Position numbers and translations under genes: made by a program. A stretch of 62,690 nucleotides of DNA, filler included, from Choristocarpus tenellus KU-1152 (lineage: Eukaryota; Protista; Phaeophyceae): the NCBI GenBank assembly GCA_964200185.2. It is 11 parts of 11 records of this genome, joined end to end, with 100 filler letters (N's around TTAATTAATTAA, not from the genome) between each part and the next. Parts side by side here need not be neighbours in the genome. Positions count along the whole stretch, not along the records: positions 32,860 to 41,719 come from CAXNAD020004251.1; 10 more parts are not named here. One strand, written 5' to 3'. A model generated the notes under the pieces. That model was not told the origin of the DNA, did not search any database, and saw nothing but the letters and a program-made list of their open reading frames with translations. Positions 396-41,819 of the stretch are shown here, piece by piece; position 1 is the first letter of the stretch; the number at the start of each line of letters is the position of its first letter.

Positions 396-1009
396 CTACA
401 GGGGCCATTGGCATTGCCACCAGAGTCACCACCAGTGGAGAGGGAGTGCAAGTGGAAGAGGGATGAGGATATTAATGGAGCAACTTTGACTGCTTCACAT
501 CAATAATATTACTACACATTAAGGGATAGGCTTAGGGTGCATGGTCCTTTCATGTACTGTATGTAATGCACAAGTACACAGCCTTCTCTTTTTGGTGTCC
601 ATTTCTGTCAAACAGAAAGCAAACTACAATAAAAATAAATAAATAAATAACCCTAACGTATAAAACAAACCTTCTTTTCAATGAGGTCCACCACAGGCTG
701 ATTGTCAATAAAGTGGATATGCTCAAAGTGAATCTGTTCGTTTGTATACACAGTCTCCTCCTCCTGGAACGTGTGTCTGTGGAACAGTAAATTGCCCCAT
801 AGCACAACCCCGTAGCGCCCCGTAGCATAGCGAAGGGATGAATTAATATGGACGCCATAGAAGGGTGCGAAAAGTGACAAAGGGAGGTGGGGTCAGCATA
901 CACAAAGTTTCTACTGCACAAGAGAATGGTTTCACCACAAGGTGTACCTTTATTACTACACAAAATTTAAAAACAAGACTATGCCATGAAAACATCGAAG
1001 GAGCTTGAC

Positions 1010-1061
<52 letters not shown>

Positions 1062-4000
1062 ATCTCCATTGTCTCATGACAAAGCCTTACATAATATTAA
1101 TAGTATCATTATCCATAGGGCCCTACAGTTGTCATACTATTACAAAGTAATCAGAAGACCCATACATAAATAACATCTAAAAACCAGAGCATTAAATAGG
1201 GGCATTTCTACCTACAGACCACAGACTAATTCAGTTATTTCCGGATTTCAGTCAACATGGAAATTGGTAGACGGTGGAGTGGTATGACGTTGAACAGTAT
1301 AAGAAACATTTACCGTGAATGGTGTAAGGAATTACATACATACCACCAATCGGGTTTTTTATTTTTGCCATACCACCCCTATGAAGAAAAAAAACTCTAC
1401 ATTGACATTAACACATTCAACAAGAAATTTCCTACACAGAGAAACATTTATTTTTAATTTGGTTTGTAGGGTTATGATTAGGGTTAGGGTTACACTTCAG
1501 AGTAGTAGTAGCACACTTGGGAACTGAAACAAAAAAAAAAGAAAACCACAATTTTTTGTCCCCTTAAATCTTTGTCTCAAAGTAACTTGACACTACACAA
1601 AACTAAAGATAAACACTAAAGACAAAAACTAAACATCAACACTTGACATAAAAAATAAAGATAAACACTAAAGATAAAACACTAAACATAAACATTAAAG
1701 ATAAAACACTAAACATAAACACTACACCAAACTAAAATCAAACAGGTGTCACAACCTAAGACAAGCCAAGTGTTACATTCTATAGTAGTAGTGCACTGTA
1801 CCTGTTGAAGTGTTGCTGTAGCTTCTCATTGGTGTAGTTGATACATAGCTGCTCAAAACGATTCTTCTCAAAGATCTCAAAACCAAAGATGTCCAGCACC
1901 CCAATGAACTTGTGAGATGGCTCCCCCTTGATATGTCATTTGTTCATTTTGAAATTTACAAAAAGAGTTAGCTACAGTGATGGAACACATACACAATACA
2001 CATGAAAGGTCACAATACATCACCATCACATAACCATCATGTCACCATCATATCACCATCATATCAAAATCAAGTCACAATCACGTCCCAATACATCACC
2101 GCCATATCACTATCACATCGCCATCAGATCACCATCACATCACCATCACGTCACAATCGTATCATATTCATGTTACAGATAGCTACACAACAATAATAAT
2201 AAAAAAAACAAAGGAGGAAAAAAAAAAAGTACCCCCACCTGTCAACAAACATCATCCCTAACCAAAACCCAAAACCTATTTGATTTTCTGATGCAATGAG
2301 TCTTAGAAATACACCAATTGGACCCAAATATTTTGTGAGTACTCTGATACTGCATCAGTCTGCAAGAAGCTGATGGCACTATTTGGGGGTATACCTCATA
2401 TTGTCATCAAATAGTATGATCCGGCATAGTATAATACCATTCCATTGATCCCTGAATATTTTATTTATTAGCTGTCGGAAATATTTTTTGTAAGTAAAGT
2501 TTCCATAATAGCTAATAAATGCAGTACCCTAGAACAACCGGCCCTTTCTATTCGCTACATACAAACGCCATCCCAATCTTGTGACTACCTCTCAAGCTGG
2601 AATAGGGTACACATAGCGTAACCATGTACCATATACCATATACCATATACCATGGAGACACACAAACTCAACTCATATTTATGAGCATTTTTGTATTGTA
2701 ATCATTTGTAACCCCTCTCTTCCCCACCCTCCCCGCTACACACCCACAGGCAACAACCACTACTACAATACGCTCAATAACATTATTTATATTATATACA
2801 CTACTACAATACACTCAATAACATTAATTTTTGTTATATACACTACTACAATACGCTCAATAACATTATTTATTATTATATACACTACTACAATACACTC
2901 AGTAATATTATTTATTATAATTATAAACACTACTACAATACGCTCAATAACATTATTTATTATTATATACACTACTACAATACACTCAATAATATTATTT
3001 ATTATAATTATAAACACTACTACAATACACTCAATAAAATTATTTATTATTATATACACTACTACAATACACTCAGTAACATTATTTATTATTATATACA
3101 CTACTACAATACGCTCAATAACATTATTTATTATTATATACACTACTACAATACACTCAATAATACTATTTATTATTATATACACTACTACAATACACTC
3201 AATAACATTATTTATTATTATATACACTACTACAATACACTCAGTAATATTATTTATTATAATTATAAACACTACTACAATACGCTCAATAAATTATTTA
3301 TTATTATATACACTACTACAATACACTCAATAATATTATACTCAATATAATTAAAACAAAAACAAAAAAAAATAGAAAATAGAAAAAAGAGCAGAGATCA
3401 CCTGTACAGCAAAGTTAATCCTCCCCACCAGCCAATCAAACATGCTGTCATATAACGCCTTCGCAAGGGCATCCGCAGCACTTCTGGCCATGTCAGGCCG
3501 GTTGAGTGCAAGGGTCACTTCCCCTCTGATATTGATGGCACGGGTTGTCAAGGCCTGAGAGAGTGCCCCAGGGTCTACACGGATGAACCGGGCGGCTGTG
3601 TGGAGTGCCTGAGCACCTGATGCATCCACCTACAGCACATTCAAAATTGATTGGTACACAAGAATTGATTTAATTTACAGAGTAATTCGGATTAGGATTA
3701 GGGTTAGGGTTAGGATCAGGCACATCAAAAAGAGGGAACTTCCTACTGCATCAGATACAGATAGTTAAAACTGTACATGCAAACTGAAGATAATAATAAT
3801 CGTAATAATAATAATAATAATAATAATAATATAGTACAGAAAATAATGATACAAACAATACAGAACATAATAAAAATGATCATTGTAAGATACCACAGAC
3901 AAGTAATCGACAACATAGTATGGAAAGCACTGGTTGTCACTGTCTACCACTTACGAGCATGTACCTTTTGTGAGCATGTACCTTTTGTGAGCATGTACCT

Positions 4001-32690: not shown

Positions 32691-34885
32691 ACTTCCCCCC
32701 CTGGGTCAATGTATCTGGGGTGGGGGGGGGGTGGTTTGTGAGGGAACGTCCATTTCGTTNNNNNNNNNNNNNNNNNNNNNNNNNNNNNNNNNNNNNNNNN
32801 NNNTTAATTAATTAANNNNNNNNNNNNNNNNNNNNNNNNNNNNNNNNNNNNNNNNNNNNCCCCCCTCCCAGATACTTTGGGTCGCTTCCTGCAACTCAAG
32901 CTGGATAACATGAGGGTTTCATTGAAGGTTTGTATAGACACATGTGGAGGTAAGGACTTCCCTTCATCAGACTTCCAATGCCTGAAAAATGTGGGTGATT
33001 GGAGGTTTGGGGTCCATGGGACCCAGATAGGAGTGTGACCTGAGATCTAAGTCTGTTGTTGTGTTTATATCTCACCGAAGTGTCTCTCACAACACATCCT
33101 CTTGTGTGCTTAGTCCCTGCACGTACCTCATGTTGCAATAATCTCTTTCTGTTTGTAACCAGAAAATGCACCTGTCTAAAATAATCGTGTACAAAATACA
33201 AAAAAAAAAACATATTGACACTTTATCCCAGTCAATATTAGGGGAAGAAAAGGACAAAAACAAAGCTCAACGAAGAATANNNNNNNNNNATCTTATCCCA
33301 GTCAATTTTGGGTCAAGTCCATCCTCAATGAAAAGCTCCATCTTCAATTTTTGAAATCGGCTGTTCTCTCAGGTAGAGAAATGGGAGAAATGGGAGAAAT
33401 GGGAGAAATATGGGAGATTAGAGGCAGCCATATAATCATTGTCCTATTACATCCATGAATTTCACGGGTTCCACTACCTTCAAAGTCAACCATCCTTCAT
33501 GTGAAATGTATCAATTTTGGTAATTTTTTGCTTACATGAGTATTGTGGGTTCAAACTTCTTCGATAACATACTTTTTTTACAGATACTTTTAGAATGGAG
33601 TAGTATTACAAAATTGTAGTAATTATTATTAAAGTAATTAATACTATTTTTATCAAGAGTAGTGTGAGGGATGAGAGACTGTTGGTTGAAGTTGTAGTTC
33701 AAAGAAGGTAGTGGAAATTGGTTGAGAAAAGGGAAGGATAATAAGGACAATAAAACTTATATTTTTAGAAAGAAAAGTGGTGGAAGAGAAAAAGAGAAGA
33801 GTAAAGATAAGAAAGATTAGAACCCTCACAGAAAAAACATAACACAAAACGTAACGCCAACAGAGATGAAAAAAAACGAAGAAAGGGTGCGAGAGAAATC
33901 AGCTCAACAAGAAAAGAGCATTCAGCAGATAGTAATAATGGTGGTGAGAGTGGCCAGCGACCTCAGCCTGCTGCTTTGGTGTGACGTACATTATTACCTA
34001 TCACACCTTCCTTGGAATGTCATTCAGCCTTCAAGCTTGTTGTGCCTTCATTCACATACTTGTACCACTCCTGGTGGCTAGTGGCCCTGGTGCTCGAACC
34101 CTCACCTCCAATCCCAAACTTGTCAACATTGTGTTGGAGGCATGTTAATCAGTTCTGACCCTGTCCGCCTTGCTTCCGTTTTCCTACGGCAACGTCCCAA
34201 AACATCAATACCCTAAACTGTTGCTTGTTCCCCATGTATGTGAGGATTTGTTCCGGGTAAAATTCTAATATAACCTCTGTTTGCCCACTATTATTGCCTC
34301 CATACTCTCAAACCCACTCCTCATATAAGCTCTTGTACGATTGTTGGTGTATGAAAATTATTAAAAGGAACAGGTGGACGTTCGATGATTGTTTCACTTT
34401 GTGATATCCATGGTTCCCATCTACCTGTAACTATGTAGGATAATTCATTGTTATTTATTTATTTGAATGGAGTATCTTAACTCATAACAATCCACTTTTC
34501 GCGCCCCATATCGCACGATGACGAGCTGCGCGATGAATCAATAATCAGTAGAACCACATCAATGAAAATACAAAATGATATTCTAATATAAAAAAAACAG
34601 AGAAAATATAAACAATCCAGAAAAAAGAACCAACAATTCTTGGAGATGAATATTGAATTGTTGCCCAATTTGTGTGTTCAAGAAAATTGGCGGTATTCTC
34701 AGAACTCCTCATCTTCTCCCTAAACCGCTCTATTTGTTTGTATATTATGTGGATTTAGGTTAACAATTGTGTAGGAGTAGGGATTCCGTTGTATGAGGTA
34801 CATAACCATATATTGGCCACACAAACTACCTGCCACTTCTTCGCCAGCATAACTCTCAGCCTTTGGCAGCTGCTTCCATTAGACT

Positions 34886-37005
34886 ATGTCGGCCACTCAG
34901 ACAGGGACCAAACGCCCAGGTTCTCCAGAGGAGCGCGTAGAGGAACCTAAGAAGGTAGCGATATGGGATAAGGACTCGTGTAAGAGTGCACAAGATGGTG
35001 GGGAGCACGAAGAAAAGAAGCCTGAGGTACATGCAATGTATGTCCCAATGTCTCAAACAAAGTTAAAAGCAACCAGAAATAGTTGGCGTTGACCTGTCGC
35101 TTAGATTCTCTCCCTACTCAATTCTTACGAGGTACTAATCTTAACGTGTCTGTTTCGTTTGGATTTGTAGGACCCCCCCACTCGTAACGGTGTCCAGGTG
35201 GATATCGTGACGCAAGATTCCGACAAGTTACTCCAATTCTTGGTCAAGGCGATTGGAGGCCGAGAATATTTCCGCTTCAAGGAGGAGTCAGGCAAGATCC
35301 TACACCTGGCTGTGGATATCGGGGGTGTGAGCGCTTTCACCGCTGATAAGGGCAACGCCTTTGACAAGGGGGAAGGCGACAAGTACGTTCGCCTGAACTT
35401 GCACACTCCTGAACCCGAGGTTCTTGGAGAAAAGATGGTCAAGGCGGGCTCGACGGTCGTACTACCTTGCGAGAAGCAGTTCTGGGGTTCCACGTAAGGA
35501 TTGCAGGGGTAAAATGTTTCATTCGTCCATCACCGGCCCAGAATCCCCATAAAGTCGTGTGAACTCGGAGTCCTGAGATGTCTCGCAGATAAGATGCACT
35601 CCGCAATTTAATCGCAAAATATGTTCTTATTTGTGTTCATCACCAACAACTACCTCACTCTTGCCTAACCCAATTGCCTTGTCAACGTGCCAGCTTCATG
35701 TGACACACCTATTGGCCTTGTCTCCTCTCCTGAAAACGATGCAGGTATGGGCAGTACAAGGACCCCTTTGGACAGGTCTGGACCTTATGCACCCCTTCAA
35801 GTCCGGCCCAGGATATACCAGAACCACTTCGCCGAAAGGTCGTGCCTTTCATCTCGGTCAAGAACGCCGATGCGTACATTGCATTCCTGAAGGATACACT
35901 AGGAGCTGAGCCCTTGGGACCAGTAGCCAAGACCCCTGAGGGCAAGGTCATGTGTCAGGAGTTGATCCTTAATGGAGGGGGTCTAATTATGGTCGGCGAC
36001 CATTTCGACGATTCCGAGGGAGCTGTTGTCAACATCATCCTCGGACTTGAGCATGGTCAGGCTGCCAAGGTTGCTAAGGAATTTGAGGTCAATGGTGGAG
36101 AAATTGTGGACCCTCCTTCTCTCAAGTTTTGGGGACAGGGTGAGTGCCCTAGGGGTATAAGGCCAGGAGTGTTGATATGATCAGTCACGAAGGGACCATC
36201 ACCCTCTCCCTGATATAGAAAACCTCACAACTTATCTCTTTGCCAAAGTATCCACCTTCCCAAGTATTGCTTTTTATTACTGAGAGAGAGGGAACTTAAA
36301 TGTTGTTGGTAACCTTTTCATATCTCCAAATTCCATTCCCACACGCCTCTGCTGTTTGTTCTCTTGCTAGTGTTCGGTAAGTGCAAGGATCCCCTTGGTG
36401 TGACCTGGTGTCTCAGTGAGCCAGAAGTTGCTGAATACAATGAGGAGGAGAAGGCAATCGATGTCCGCCTGGGTGCTAAGCATGCCTGGAAGTGGTCATG
36501 GGGAGTAGAGGATGTTCCTCGCATGTGCTTCTACGGTGAAGTCCGTTCTGTAGATAAGAAGGAAATTGAGGATGCAATGAGCGACATGATGCCAGCAGCT
36601 CATGGGGCTGCATGCAAGGCTGGTGCCACCATCACAGGGCACCCTGGTGCTATATATTACACATGGGATGAGGGGGAAGGGGGAAACACACGTATCACTT
36701 GTGGACCCATGATAGCTGAAGGGATGCCTGAGGTGGAAGGAGATGGTGTTGGCAGCCGTTCAGTTGGTGGGGGAAAGTATGCAACTGTGACACATGTTGG
36801 GCCCTACAATGGTCTCAAAAAGGCATGGGAATCTCTGTTTGAGTGGGCTGCAGGAAAAGGTCATGAACTGGTCATGCCAGGGTTTGAGTTGTACGAGAAC
36901 AGTCCAACTGATGTGGACGCCTCCAAGCTAAGGACCAAGGTTCATATAACCATCAAAGATAAATCCCCACCCTCTGGTGCTGCCCCCACTGCACCATCTG
37001 GCTAA
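34886..37005 (+). CDS. Complete 4-exon gene, 497 aa: two tandem PhnB-like VOC (glyoxalase/bleomycin-resistance) domains fused to a C-terminal GyrI-like small-molecule-binding domain
   Basis: Exons 34886-35026, 35171-35493, 35745-36139 and 36371-37005 have canonical GT/AG ends and total 1494 nt from ATG to TAA. VOC signatures are KILHLAVDIGG...QFWGSTYGQYKDPFGQVWTL and VVPFISVKNADAYIAFLKDTLG...KFWGQVFGKCKDPLGVTWCL. The GyrI-like signature is GGKYATVTHVGPYNGLKKAWESLFEWAAGKG...FELYENSP...LRTKVHITI. Confidence 0.9.
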
Positions 37006-38479
37006 CTAACACAAGGAACAGTCGCTGTTGAGCTAGAGATGATGGCTTGGTGTGGGAGGGGGGGAATGTAAAATATAGATTTGACTGGACTACTCTCAAC
37101 CCCTTACCAAAATTTACCTCTAGAAATACTTGTGGTGATGGGAACGGATTGCTTTAAGGTCCCTGTGGAAGTGTTGCAACACACCCAAAGTAAGATAGGT
37201 TTGGGTTTGCAGGATTCTGAATTGTATTTTTATATCATGATTGGCTGGATTGTTTTGGAACTGTTGCAGTAGCTATCTCCTGTTTATGCTGCATCTACAT
37301 GGTGTGGAGTAGAATGGGAAGAGGCAGGTGGTTGGTCAGACTCTCATCGGCTTGGCGGCACACCCTTAGATGTAACATAAGTTGAGGATGTGAATTGTTA
37401 GGGAATCCTCCTTCACAACTCCAGGTATAATTTGTTGCTTGCGTATCTGCGCTTTAGTCAACCTTTACAACATTCACATCAATGTAATTTTGTAGTAAGC
37501 TTGTTATTGGAAGGTATTGTAAATAAGCAAGATAGGCTAATAGTTAAGTGTCCAATTGTTCACCTCAAGTCATGCATGTCAGGTCACCAAGTTGGGCAAA
37601 GCCTTTAAAGAATAGTAACGTTGATGCTCTACAATTCTCTAGGTCCATCCACCAGTAAGTAGGTGTCCATCAGCACAAATCATCATAACCCTCCATGTTC
37701 CATCCTCGCAGTTTCACCAATGTGATGTCCTGCATTTACTTCATAAAGAATCCCTTTCCTGAAACCTGGGAGAACGCAGAGTGGAGGAAAGGAAATCATT
37801 TTTTACTTTTTTGGAAGTTCAGAAGTATTATCATCTACCTGTGTTGTTTTGCTCTGTTGTGGAGTGGGCAGTATGGTGTGGCTGAGAGAGAAACCGATGA
37901 GGTAATCATAAATTTAGCTTACACCATGTATAGATGCGGCATCTTGACTGGCCCAATCACCCCCCTATTTTCATTAGCACTACACAGTACAGTAGAGAAC
38001 ATGAAGGTATTTTAATTGTCATAGAGAAGGTTTTGGGTTACAGATGAACTTCTTCAGATGGACAAAAAATTGAGTAAAACAACTTTCCAGTGCGATCAAT
38101 CTAACCTGATGTAAAACAAAAGCTGTCCCCCCCAAATTTTTCCTTTTTTATGGCACTACCCAACACAATCGTAATCAAAAATGATTTTTCTGTCTCTTCA
38201 TGACTGGTGGAAGTTTGCGTGTGATTGTTGTAAATCATAGAGCTTATAGTTTTCAGATAGACAAGGTGTATGAGAGTACTCTGACTTTATCCCAATACTC
38301 TGTACATCATGACACTTTACAAAAAAGGTACTAGTACCTGGACACAAAGTGGTGCGTATCTGTGGTCTTACATACGATACTATCCTTACTTCCTATCTCT
38401 GTGATCATTGAACAGAATGGGAAAATGTACATGGTTTCGTAGTATTGTTCAAATAGTTCTACCAATAGTTCCTAAAAAG

Positions 38480-39400
38480 AGAGAATTGCACAGGTCGCCA
38501 TCATGTGATGGGACTTACAGCAATAACCACACGTACTTACCCACCCAGCCACACCAACTTATTTTCAGGGTCCCCATAATCGCATGTCAAAAAGCGAGTC
38601 TGAAAAATGTAAACGATATTATCCTACCCCCAAAAAGCAGTCATCGCACAATAAAAAGGCTTCCCTCTGCTCTGCAGTAAGCCTTTGTCTTCCCCCAATG
38701 CATAATCCAATTTAAGTAAGAATTCTGGAGCTGATTGGGTGCGTACAATTTCTGGGAATAAACAAACTTGATGCCATGAAAAACATAAAAATAAGAACTT
38801 TGTACGATCAATTGGGGAAAAAAAAGAGAGCATTACTCCAGATATCAACATTAGTCATACCCCAGCAATTAAGACCCTCAAAATATTGATAACAAAACTT
38901 GCAGAGTTGATCAGGAGTTACACTTGAGAAACAGGAATTGTCCACTCATACCAACCTGGTTAACTCAAACCGGTAAGCCTTTCACTGTTCCTACCTCAGC
39001 CAACAGAGCCAACAGGTAGAGTGCTCTTTGATGAAGCACATCTGCAAGGGACCCCAACCTAGACATGCTAATGAAAAAAAATACAACTGAGGTAAATAAT
39101 TAAGAATTTGAACTACAATGACTATAACAACGCATATTGGTCATTCAAATAGAGGACTCTTCTCTTCTATCCTAGAGTGACATGAAGAAAATTACGTTCA
39201 AACTTTACAAAAACGCCTCTATTGACACACACACCATGAATACAGCCAGAATAGACATCCTGAAGACCTATGTCACAACATTTCATGACACACACAACCT
39301 TACGTTTATTGATGTGGCCCCTAGTCCAGACAAGAAATTCATGCCGTTTATCACAAGATGATCTATGAGGAAATTCACATCATCATGTCTATCACTTTGG
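38480..39400 (+). mobile_element. Highly decayed non-LTR (LINE) reverse-transcriptase relic
   Basis: Fragments SPSCDG (compare KSPGPDG) and ISHTPAIKTLKILITKLAELIRSYT*ETGIVHSYQPG (compare RPISLLN..YKI..K.LA.RL......I...Q.GF); many stops. Confidence 0.4.
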
Positions 39401-39929
39401 GATGATCTATTTCCCCTGCTTCCCTGAGGTATGTTACCCGGCCCTCTCCTTAAGCTCCCCCCCCTACAATATCCCTCCTTGCTTCACCTATCACTATTCC
39501 CTTCATCTCTTTTCAAGTTGTACCCTTCCTCATCCTGTGCCTTTTCAACCTTCCTCTCAATATTTAAAAGCTAAGCCCATGTCAGAACATGATCAATGTT
39601 TTTATGGTTCTATGACGGTACCCATACCCCCACATTGATGAGACTCCTGAGCTCCATGAAAAGTGCTCAAGCCTTGCAAAAACAGCATGCATAAGGACAC
39701 CCATGACTTATTCTTCATCACTCCCTACCATCACTACAACACACAGGACGGAAACTTCAGATCATAGACAGGAAACAGAGACTACTACAAATGCACTGTT
39801 GAAGGATCTGTAACAGTACAAAAGCAACAGCACGTTTTGAAATATCATGACTTTCCAAATCAACATTAATGAGAGATCAAAGGTACAACTGCCATTCGGC
39901 GGTGAAAAATAATCCTAGAAAGGGCAAAA

Positions 39930-40133
39930 AGACTTCGTATTGTAGAATTGCAGAAAGAGTCTTTGCTGGATTGAGGTGTCACACATTGTGTGTGTAAAGA
40001 AGGGGGGAATGTTAACTTTGCATACACTATTGTGCCCATAAGGAAATGAAATAGGGTGTACTGCACAGAGTGAGAAAGACTGCTTAGAATGCGCAAGGGT
40101 TCAAACCTGCCTACTTCTCAATTGATTTTCCTC
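39930..40133 (+). mobile_element. MITE family C, 3' part
   Basis: ACACTATTGTGC..AAATAGGGTGTACTGCACAGAG..GCTTAGAATGCGCAAGGGTTCAAACCTGCCTAC..ATTGATTTTCCTC aligns with the other family C copies. Confidence 0.7.
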
Positions 40134-41415
40134 ATTATACTCTCTGATCTTAATGTGATAACTCCCAACTCCCAAAAGTATCTTCAAGATACTACATGAG
40201 ACCTGTTTGCACCACTAAGCAACCTAGGTCTTGCTAACCATACTTTTTGTTTGTCGTCAGGGATACTGTGTTTACAATGAGATGCTCAACAGTAAGTCAA
40301 ACCTTTTGCAGGTATGTTTCCTGTGGTCATTCCCTACAATGCAGAAGTACAAACTCTTCTCCCAACTCAAGAATATGAACAAATTATAAATGTAGCCTTC
40401 ATCTTACAGATAAATGATGTATCCTTGACACACGATTTTTGCAGGACTATCATTTCTCTACCTGTGCAAGCTACATGGGATCACTTCTATGTGAAAGAAA
40501 CCACATCTGGCCCCCTGAGGAACGGCTGCGCTGTTGTTAAGGATGAAAACCCAACATAGAACAGGACAAATACTACTGAGATCAGGATTATTCTTCTGTG
40601 CACCCTAAACCCAATACTCTCAATGGCTTTTTTTGAGACTGCTCACGAAGGTTTTGAACCGCATCAACATCGATACTCCACAGGACACAAGAGTTGGTAC
40701 AAACTTTCATACCAAACGTTATCACAAATCCGAAGAGATGTGTGAACTATCATCAGTTAAATACAAATATTTCAAGTAATATCTCTTCTCATTCTCTCTG
40801 CAAAATAATTCACAAGCTCCAAAGCTGCTTTAAAAATTTGATGTCCGCAAGGCGAAATATCTTGTATGTGAACGCCGATTCAACAGATCTTACATCTCTC
40901 TTGGTCAGATCGCCACCTACAGCATTGTGGTTGCAACCAACACGGCCTTCAATCCGTCCCAACAAAAAAATGAGACATAAAGATATGGATGACGAATGAG
41001 AAAAAGTAGGAATGAGGCTGGATGCGGCCTAGATTTGATAAACTGTGGGCACATCTGTTTTTACACTCATGCATTAAAGGTCTGCTCTGCACCTTGTCCC
41101 TTGGAACTAGTGACCCTTGAACAGAAGTGTTGCAATATTACTAGACACATTACATGCAGATTTAATACCTGTTCCAAAGTCCACCCAAGTTCATGGATCC
41201 AATGCCAACATGCGCCACATTTTCCACACCATGTTGTGAGCTTCTTCCTTGGTAGGCATCTAATGCCAAGCTCCAAAAGTGGCACGTAAGTGGTATTCAG
41301 CCTGTGGGGCAGTAATCAATCCCCCTGCAAAACAGCAAGAGAACTGTGCTCAAATTAAAGTTGCTGTGAGTCTGAGGCAATTGTAGCGTGGTTGGAATGC
41401 TCAAGTCAGGCACCA

Positions 41416-41417
<2 letters not shown>

Positions 41418-41462
<45 letters not shown>
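41418..41462. repeat. (AG)n microsatellite
   Basis: About 22 perfect AG units. Confidence 0.95.
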
Positions 41463-41465
<3 letters not shown>

Positions 41466-41819
41466 TCCAGAATATTTAAAACATCTTAAGGCAGGGAAGG
41501 GGAGCCAGTACACAACTGGTGAGCTGACTGCCCCAGCAGGTAAAAAAAAAATGGAACAAAGTGGAGCACACTCAGCCTATCGATGCACAACAGCGGTTGT
41601 GCAATAGTGTACACCAGAACAGCGCAGCAGAGGTGGATGTACCCCGCCAGTATCTGCAGACGAATATGCAACAAGAAACATCCCACACATGTGAAAAAAA
41701 AAAGTCTCAAGCCCGAGGGNNNNNNNNNNNNNNNNNNNNNNNNNNNNNNNNNNNNNNNNNNNNTTAATTAATTAANNNNNNNNNNNNNNNNNNNNNNNNN
41801 NNNNNNNNNNNNNNNNNNN

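Follow-up and report, generated by a model that had tools for sequence, protein, structure and literature searches.

The closest solved relatives of the GyrI-like domain studied here are the Chlorobium tepidum protein CTR107 and the Rho-tag engineered from it (PDB entries 5kax, 3e0h, 9rtm, and 9rtl), stand-alone bacterial proteins of ~155 amino acids that bind rhodamine dyes and carry the pocket motifs HxGPY and ExY. The VOC domains studied here share a C-terminal FWG...D.FG..W signature with PhnB-type VOC proteins (PF06983; 5kef, 3l20, 1u6l, and 3oms), which are mostly single-domain homodimers of ~140 amino acids, and with the plant protein At5g48480 (1xy7). We analyzed a stretch of 62,690 nucleotides (nt), filler included, joined end to end from 11 parts of the genome of the brown alga Choristocarpus tenellus KU-1152 (GCA_964200185.2; the whole stretch is hereafter the window) and found both kinds of domain encoded by one gene at 34886-37005 on the + strand, within the part that comes from CAXNAD020004251.1 (positions 32,860 to 41,719; hereafter the piece). 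The gene is spliced from four exons and encodes a VOC-VOC-GyrI-like protein; its architecture, public since the Ectocarpus genome, marks an uncharacterized family of brown algae and not a new kind of system.

The window protein joins in one chain what these relatives carry separately. CTR107 and Rho-tag lack VOC domains and are ~20% identical to it over the fold, and in place of a PhnB-type homodimer it holds two diverged VOC copies (25% identical to each other) followed by the GyrI-like domain. The packing of its VOC pair resembles that of the two-domain VOC protein Rv0577 (3oxh). With the cyclopropanoid cyclopropyl hydrolases YtkR7 and Lin2189 (PMC5684135), it has in common the GyrI-like fold as well as the glutamate and tyrosine of E-x-Y, but the hydrolases are stand-alone prokaryotic proteins of ~210 amino acids. 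The glutamate of the FELYE motif corresponds to a conserved acid (BmrR E253, Lin2189 E185) that is general to GyrI-like binders, and cyclopropane hydrolysis needs, in addition, a second acid and an aromatic cage, which in Lin2189 are E157, acting with E185, and Y46, W85, W99, F154, and Y187 (PMC5684135). Similar small-molecule-binding domains are combined in one chain in bacterial fusions of a PhnB-type VOC domain with AHSA1 and of SRPBCC with a GyrI-like domain. A bacterial Glyoxalase+GyrI-like cluster, known from its ESM Atlas entry alone, unites the same kinds of domain as the algal protein but has one VOC domain instead of two. In brown algae, the Phaeoexplorer study attributed ~1% of genes to horizontal gene transfer, mostly from bacteria, and found domain fusions to be frequent early in the lineage; the VOC-VOC-GyrI family is not mentioned there (10.1101/2024.02.19.579948).

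Gene structure and transcripts

The gene model was read directly from the sequence between 34600 and 37300. Translation starts from the ATG at 34886, two codons downstream of an in-frame TAG (34880-34882). Exon 1 in its long form (34886..35026, 47 codons) encodes the charged, low-complexity N-terminus, and exon 2 (35171..35493) the body of VOC domain 1 (VOC1), ending in FWGS plus two nucleotides of a Thr codon. Exon 3 (35745..36139) contains the VOC1 tail (YGQYKDPFGQVW) and, beyond a linker, the body of VOC domain 2 (VOC2), and exon 4 (36371..37005) contains the VOC2 tail (VFGKCKDPLGVTW), a helical linker, the GyrI-like domain, and a Pro/Ala-rich tail ending in TAA. All three introns (35027..35170; 35494..35744, phase 2; 36140..36370, phase 1) are of the GT..AG type, and the exons sum to 141+323+395+635 = 1494 nt, giving 497 codons plus the stop with the frame intact. 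The VOC signatures FWGSTYGQYKDPFGQVW and FWGQVFGKCKDPLGVTW span exons 2/3 and 3/4, respectively. The guanine-cytosine content is ~0.50 in the gene and ~0.36-0.40 in the flanks. Window searches were done exon by exon, and where a joined sequence was needed, the public C. tenellus protein described below (P0001) or orthologues were used. Each exon is 49-64% identical to orthologues, and the reading frame is therefore not due to chance. A preliminary description, made from the sequence alone, had proposed a single four-exon gene with canonical splice sites, a 497-amino-acid open reading frame, and a low-complexity N-terminus; we reproduced this model, and the six-frame list of open reading frames indeed presents the gene only as pieces.

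Three sequencing runs (X1-X3; one study, one organism) were aligned on 34500-37500. Run X1 contributes a genomic contig that matches the window exactly and is possibly the source of its sequence, and run X3 is genomic and of low depth. Run X2 has a depth of 450-3200 over the exons and 0 within introns 1 and 2 and behaves like RNA, its record carrying no RNA label; contig depth is, in all cases, a rough guide only and a poor measure of expression. The leftmost X2 contig begins at 34842, giving a 5' untranslated region of at least 34842..34885, and this transcribed leader contains no upstream ATG. Contigs of X2 join 35493>35745 at a depth of 1673, with a shorter flank of 255 nt, and 36139>36371 at a depth of 1331; a contig retaining intron 3 has a depth of 54. 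These two joints show that the VOC and GyrI exons are spliced together in transcripts, as had been predicted.

The preliminary splice sites were exact for introns 2 and 3. For intron 1, the joint observed is 34954>35171 (depth 1673), which uses an in-frame alternative donor, AAG/GTAGCG, so that intron 1 begins at 34955, exon 1 is reduced to 23 codons, and the protein to 473 amino acids. A second X2 contig (34926-35007, depth 1445) reads past the 34954 donor, and the depth falls to zero deeper in intron 1. This contig fits the donor at 35026/35027, although a joint from 35026 is not among the X2 contigs. The choice of donor adds or removes 24 charged residues (VAIWDKDSCKSAQDGGEHEEKKPE), and the depths of 1673 and 1445 suggest that both forms of exon 1 are common in X2. 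The read-through contig ends beside a C>T difference at 35008, seen in run X3 and synonymous in a His codon of the long exon 1. Among the orthologues introduced below, the N-terminus is long in Discosporangium and short in Ectocarpus, and the window N-terminus MSATQTGTKR aligns with MASNEAGTKR of Discosporangium.

The public gene model for C. tenellus is shorter. With exon 4 as the query, one protein matches at 100% identity: P0001, a C. tenellus protein of 362 amino acids that NCBI lists as "unnamed protein product". It has the same exon 2/3 and 3/4 junctions as the window model, but its first residue is a Met inside exon 2 (MVKAGS...). It thereby lacks ~111-135 N-terminal residues, namely exon 1 and ~88 residues that make up most of VOC1 (window 34886-35434). 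Because exon 1 is joined to exon 2 in X2 and both exons align to the N-termini of orthologues, the longer four-exon model is the better one, and the public model needs correction at its N-terminus.

Domains and predicted fold

The GyrI-like domain occupies approximately 36484..36954 (+; exon-4 residues 38-194), as bounded by Pfam and PDB matches. Exon 4 matches Pfam GyrI-like (PF06445) with E 4.9e-13 and 50.1 bits against a gathering cut-off of 26, and P0001 scores 48.6 bits. In single-sequence searches of the PDB, exon 4 finds 9rtm at 5.8e-8 and CTR107 at 5e-7; with the family profile, the GyrI part finds 9rtm at 1.9e-12 and CTR107 at 2e-10, followed at a distance by SbmC (1jyh; E 0.017) and the hydrolase Lin2189 (E 0.045). 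The sequence HVGPY (36793..36807, +) represents the H-x-G-x-Y signature of GyrI-like domains, and its H, G, and Y reach 90% conservation or more in a 54-sequence alignment (A4), with H and G invariant in a further alignment (A6). The sequence FELYE (36883..36897, +) contains the conserved pocket glutamate and tyrosine, the equivalents of Lin2189 E185 and Y187; in A4, these residues, E441 and Y443, hardly vary. In one related algal lineage (P0006/P0155, from Logan contigs; L003), the motif reads VYIYEN instead of the FELYEN or VEVYEN of the others, the pocket glutamate being exchanged for tyrosine. We rejected a gyrase inhibitor of the SbmC type, as the NCBIfam equivalog NF007451 scored 14.2 bits against a cut-off of 179; NCBIfam searches with the window exons returned only noise.

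For the VOC pair, the signal is weaker when exons are searched separately. Exon 3 alone matches Pfam Glyoxalase below threshold, exon 2 alone has no Pfam match, and neither gives a significant PDB match; exon 3 alone also finds nothing in the homologous-protein search. The weak exon-wise Pfam result is explained by the introns, which move the last strand of each VOC domain to the following exon. On the joined P0001, Glyoxalase matches residues 56-166 (VOC2) with E 5.6e-10 and 40.1 bits (cut-off 20.6). Exon 2 is 64% identical to the VOC1 of the Discosporangium protein, which scores 28.6 for Glyoxalase_6 (cut-off 23.6), and Glyoxalase matches that protein in two stretches. Exon 2 is also collinear with VOC2 (25% identity, E 0.001). 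With the family profile, the VOC2 part finds the PhnB structures 5kef (4e-5) and 3l20 (6e-5), and the VOC1 part finds 1u6l (6e-5) and the plant protein At5g48480 (1xy7; 0.009). The closest bacterial VOC proteins are PhnB type (PF06983), and the domain assignment of the preliminary description, two PhnB-like VOC domains and one GyrI-like domain, agrees with all these matches. Among the residues invariant in the brown algal alignment, neither VOC domain has a His or Glu on its first strand. Residues conserved in VOC1 include E50, Y51, R53, H63, and D67 (Ectocarpus numbering), and in VOC2 the IMHA motif has Cys in place of its conserved His.

The introns cut the two VOC repeats at matching sites. 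Introns 2 (35493/35494) and 3 (36139/36140) both fall in the fifth codon after the F of FWG, in phases 2 and 1, respectively; the match could be a trace of an internal duplication with a one-base slide or the outcome of independent insertions.

Modeled with AlphaFold2, the full-length Ectocarpus orthologue reached a predicted local distance difference test (pLDDT) score of 88.7 and a predicted template modeling score of 0.82. In Foldseek searches, the VOC pair of this model was most similar to Rv0577 (template modeling score 0.76 over 268 columns), and the GyrI part matched CTR107 and rhodamine-bound Rho-tag (9rtm, 5kax, and 3e0h) with scores of 0.80-0.81 over 162-166 columns. Judged on the orthologue, the GyrI-like part is predicted to form a complete duplicated beta-alpha-beta-beta (SHS2) fold. 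The order of secondary structures and the Foldseek matches of the same model likewise place the VOC pair as paired beta-alpha-beta-beta-beta modules predicted to form clefts.

Inheritance in brown algae and relatives elsewhere

A HMMER scan of 1.84 billion representative sequences with exon 4 gave 1099 matches, of which only the first few extend to the VOC tail and the linker. They include proteins of Discosporangium mesarthrocarpum (CAN0125187.1, P0002; 464 amino acids, partial) and Sphacelaria rigidula (CAM9577823.1, P0003; 400 amino acids), the other matches of this extent being exon-sized fragments on Logan contigs. The Sphacelaria model is truncated at the N-terminus, in a manner that looks like the truncation of P0001. 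A search with the Discosporangium protein added Ectocarpus siliculosus CBN76982.1 (UniProt D8LJ98, "Glyoxalase family protein", 471 amino acids) as well as Ectocarpus sp. 6 and sp. 12. All the orthologues have two Glyoxalase regions and a GyrI-like domain (in D8LJ98, PF00903+PF06445). The proteins of the three named genera keep the VOC-VOC-GyrI-like order, are 41-64% identical to the window protein along the whole length, and have the same FWG..DPFG..W, HxGPY, and ExY motifs.

Mapping each protein on its own locus with tblastn, we found that the Discosporangium gene has the same number of exons as the window gene, four, and that Ectocarpus, with three additional introns, has seven. N-terminal lengths vary among the orthologues. 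All three window introns have counterparts at the same positions in Discosporangium and Ectocarpus, and both comparable introns are shared with the N-truncated Sphacelaria model. The common sites lie before (D/H)PPTR (HPPTRRG for intron 1), inside the fifth codon following the FWG of VOC1, and after the FWGQ of VOC2. Across at least four species, 113 alignment columns are invariant, and VOC1 and VOC2 each form a single clade, with support of 97/89 and 100/99. Shared domains and shared introns indicate vertical inheritance within brown algae. From the sequences compared, we judge the three-domain gene and its introns to be older than the divergence between Discosporangiales and the other orders sampled and to have been retained under constraint. 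The preliminary description had named an architecture common and vertically inherited across eukaryotes as evidence against its proposal; inheritance of this kind, with shared introns, is found within the brown algal orders and not across eukaryotes.

The same description did not recognize the architecture as described. It is in fact public as CBN76982.1/D8LJ98 and, truncated, as P0001, though a literature search covering the accessions of the family, GyrI-like domains in brown algae, and the Ectocarpus glyoxalase family protein found no paper on the VOC-VOC-GyrI family. Approximately 7.4 kb upstream of the Ectocarpus orthologue (L047:1-596, FN649740.1), we observed the end of a second gene, whose GyrI-like C-terminus is 97% identical to residues 317-471. 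It corresponds to CBN76980.2, "glyoxalase family protein (Partial)", and looks like a recent tandem duplicate.

Beyond brown algae, the next GyrI matches, with E of ~1e-15 or weaker, are either domains standing alone or fusions of the AraC-, MerR-, and SRPBCC-GyrI kinds, and none of the 53 multi-domain GyrI matches scanned there has a VOC domain. Scans of bacterial genomes, metagenomes, and viral contigs likewise revealed no VOC-GyrI fusion, a weak negative given the narrow motif patterns used. The genome-contig scan, based on FWG-motif patterns only, returned single-domain PhnB-type VOC proteins of ~140 amino acids, none of them reaching a GyrI part; of two longer frames, one is an adjacent open reading frame (L011) and the other a PhnB-type VOC + AHSA1/SRPBCC fusion in a metagenome-assembled genome of Candidatus Gottesmanbacteria (L014:2983-3885). 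With GyrI motifs, the metagenome scan recovered distant GyrI-like proteins lacking VOC domains (26-36% identical over most matches), and the viral contig scan had no matches. Fusions of SRPBCC with GyrI-like domains were also seen (P0058, P0090, and others), and VOC, SRPBCC, and GyrI-like domains seem to be shuffled freely in bacteria. In the ESM Atlas, the clusters nearest to the VOC half are bacterial PhnB types (96-100% bacterial), tandem forms of 245-270 amino acids included, and the Glyoxalase+GyrI-like cluster mentioned above (Bacteroidota, ~315 amino acids, 64 members; score 0.86) serves as a lead only.

The preliminary description regarded both families as mainly prokaryotic, consistent with the bacterial-type architectures that we found among the closest relatives of each domain. 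The building blocks of the gene, two-domain combinations included, appear to exist in bacteria, and a bacterial origin of its parts is plausible. In the VOC tree, which has no eukaryotic outgroup, VOC1 and VOC2 as sister copies received support of 63/42 with a long-branch warning, and deep support was weak. Contamination by bacterial DNA was rejected, because the gene has spliceosomal introns and algal orthologues.

Candidate functions and neighboring features

Ligand binding, the general role proposed in the preliminary description, is a sensible default. We consider it slightly better than an even chance that the VOC-VOC-GyrI protein is, more specifically, a noncatalytic and non-metal binder of small molecules, with multiple pockets and located in the cytosol; this location is probable from the sequence of the N-terminus, which is charged and hydrophilic and has no signal peptide. 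The nuclear gene, an orthologue of D8LJ98, would then encode a soluble protein of ~473 or 497 amino acids through its two exon-1 donors. Its two PhnB-type VOC domains would pack as a single-chain pseudo-dimer of four beta-alpha-beta-beta-beta modules and be followed by a complete GyrI-like domain of the CTR107 type. The GyrI pocket would retain the buried glutamate and the aromatics that in CTR107 and BmrR hold planar, often cationic, aromatic ligands, and the VOC pair would add one or two further clefts, as in drug-sequestering VOC proteins. That the VOC pair supplies clefts is probable, since no conserved His/Glu metal quartet was seen. The protein, a multi-pocket sponge or carrier, would take up aromatic metabolites of xenobiotic or endogenous origin stoichiometrically. 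As an evolutionary counterpart, the three-domain fusion and its introns would have been present in the common ancestor of the sampled brown algal orders, its parts probably coming from bacterial-type genes. Several points weigh against such a binder. PhnB-type VOC proteins have no established function, which makes the binding role of the VOC pair an analogy; the metal site is judged to be missing from lists of conserved residues alone, and the invariant polar residues of VOC1 (E50, Y51, R53, H63, and D67) would suit a catalytic site equally well. The high-confidence model is that of the Ectocarpus orthologue, the model of the partial window protein P0001 being weaker (pLDDT 75.7), GyrI region included, and the RNA status of run X2 is an inference from its depth pattern.

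In the main competing account, the protein could instead be an enzyme, in which the VOC pair catalyzes an isomerase-, lyase-, or thiol-transferase-like reaction on a small molecule of endogenous or foreign origin and the GyrI-like domain captures the substrate or regulates the activity. We hold this possibility tentatively and think it unlikely. In its favor, enzymes (glyoxalase I, extradiol dioxygenases, HPPD, and AbxF) account for many of the two-domain VOC proteins in the Foldseek results, several polar residues of both VOC domains are invariant across brown algae, and part of the GyrI-like family is catalytic (PMC5684135). Against it, the Foldseek matches to these enzymes have identities of only 8-15% and root-mean-square deviations of 5-20 Å, the first strands of the VOC modules contain no conserved His/Glu set, and by sequence the VOC domains belong with the PhnB type, for which no catalysis has been assigned, rather than with the metalloenzyme subfamilies. 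The role favored in the preliminary description, a laterally acquired neutralizer of genotoxins, in which the VOC domains sequester drugs of the bleomycin or mitomycin type and the GyrI-like domain hydrolyzes the cyclopropane of yatakemycin/CC-1065-type compounds, found no specific support and seems very improbable to us. Resistance proteins of these kinds do exist in both superfamilies (PMC5684135), each domain has its closest relatives among proteins of bacterial-type architecture, and the glutamate and tyrosine of the E-x-Y motif are retained. This glutamate, however, is general to GyrI-like domains and not diagnostic, being tyrosine in the algal lineage with VYIYEN; no counterparts of the second acid E157 or of the aromatic cage were picked out, Lin2189 having been compared by profile and not residue by residue, and the GyrI part groups with the noncatalytic dye binders CTR107 and Rho-tag (2e-10 to 2e-12), far from Lin2189 (0.045). 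Nor do bleomycin- or mitomycin-binding VOC proteins (BLMA/Sh-ble/MRD type) appear among the PDB matches at E <= 0.1 for the family profile and E <= 10 for exons 2 and 3; TioX, at E 1.8, is not significant. The evidence for horizontal gene transfer is circumstantial. A carrier or buffer for an endogenous metabolite of brown algae, such as phlorotannin precursors, oxylipins, or halogenated aromatics, would agree with the strong conservation of an architecture found in brown algae only and with the exon depths in the RNA-like run; contig depth cannot rank expression, however, nothing points to a particular ligand, and we give this account, with no part in xenobiotic defense, little credence. Marginally less improbable, and still doubtful, is a brown-alga-specific innovation assembled from bacterial genes near the origin of the lineage and serving as a broad-spectrum multi-pocket trap or detoxifier against the antibiotics and genotoxins of the surface microbiome.

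Should sequestration or detoxification of small molecules prove to be its role, the VOC-VOC-GyrI protein would present a case, in eukaryotes and throughout a lineage, of two bacterial-type drug-binding modules united in one chain and would bear on how brown algae cope with dense bacterial biofilms. CTR107 and Rho-tag are already in use as dye-binding tags, and the protein could provide a compact scaffold for ligand-binding tools. With the architecture already in databases and vertically inherited, the importance is limited, and the value lies in naming a testable family.

Transcription may continue far beyond the stop codon. An X2 contig of 5059 nt begins at 36370 and is collinear with the genome to 37500, the limit of the stretch compared; from its length, its end would lie at ~41428, near an (AG)22 repeat at 41418-41462. 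The region 37006..41428 would be either a 3' untranslated region of at least 4.4 kb or a second transcript, which may be noncoding, overlapping, or antisense. It contains no Pfam-positive open reading frame, as judged from Pfam searches of ten other reading frames of the piece, and the piece has no Rfam match. A G>C difference in X2 was seen at 37064, 3' of the stop codon. Upstream of the gene, at 33223-33317, 10 N (33280-33289) stand between two near-identical 25-mers (TTATCCCAGTCAAT...) 70 nt apart. The arrangement resembles a gap in the scaffold whose edges were duplicated, which would be an artefact of assembly rather than biology.

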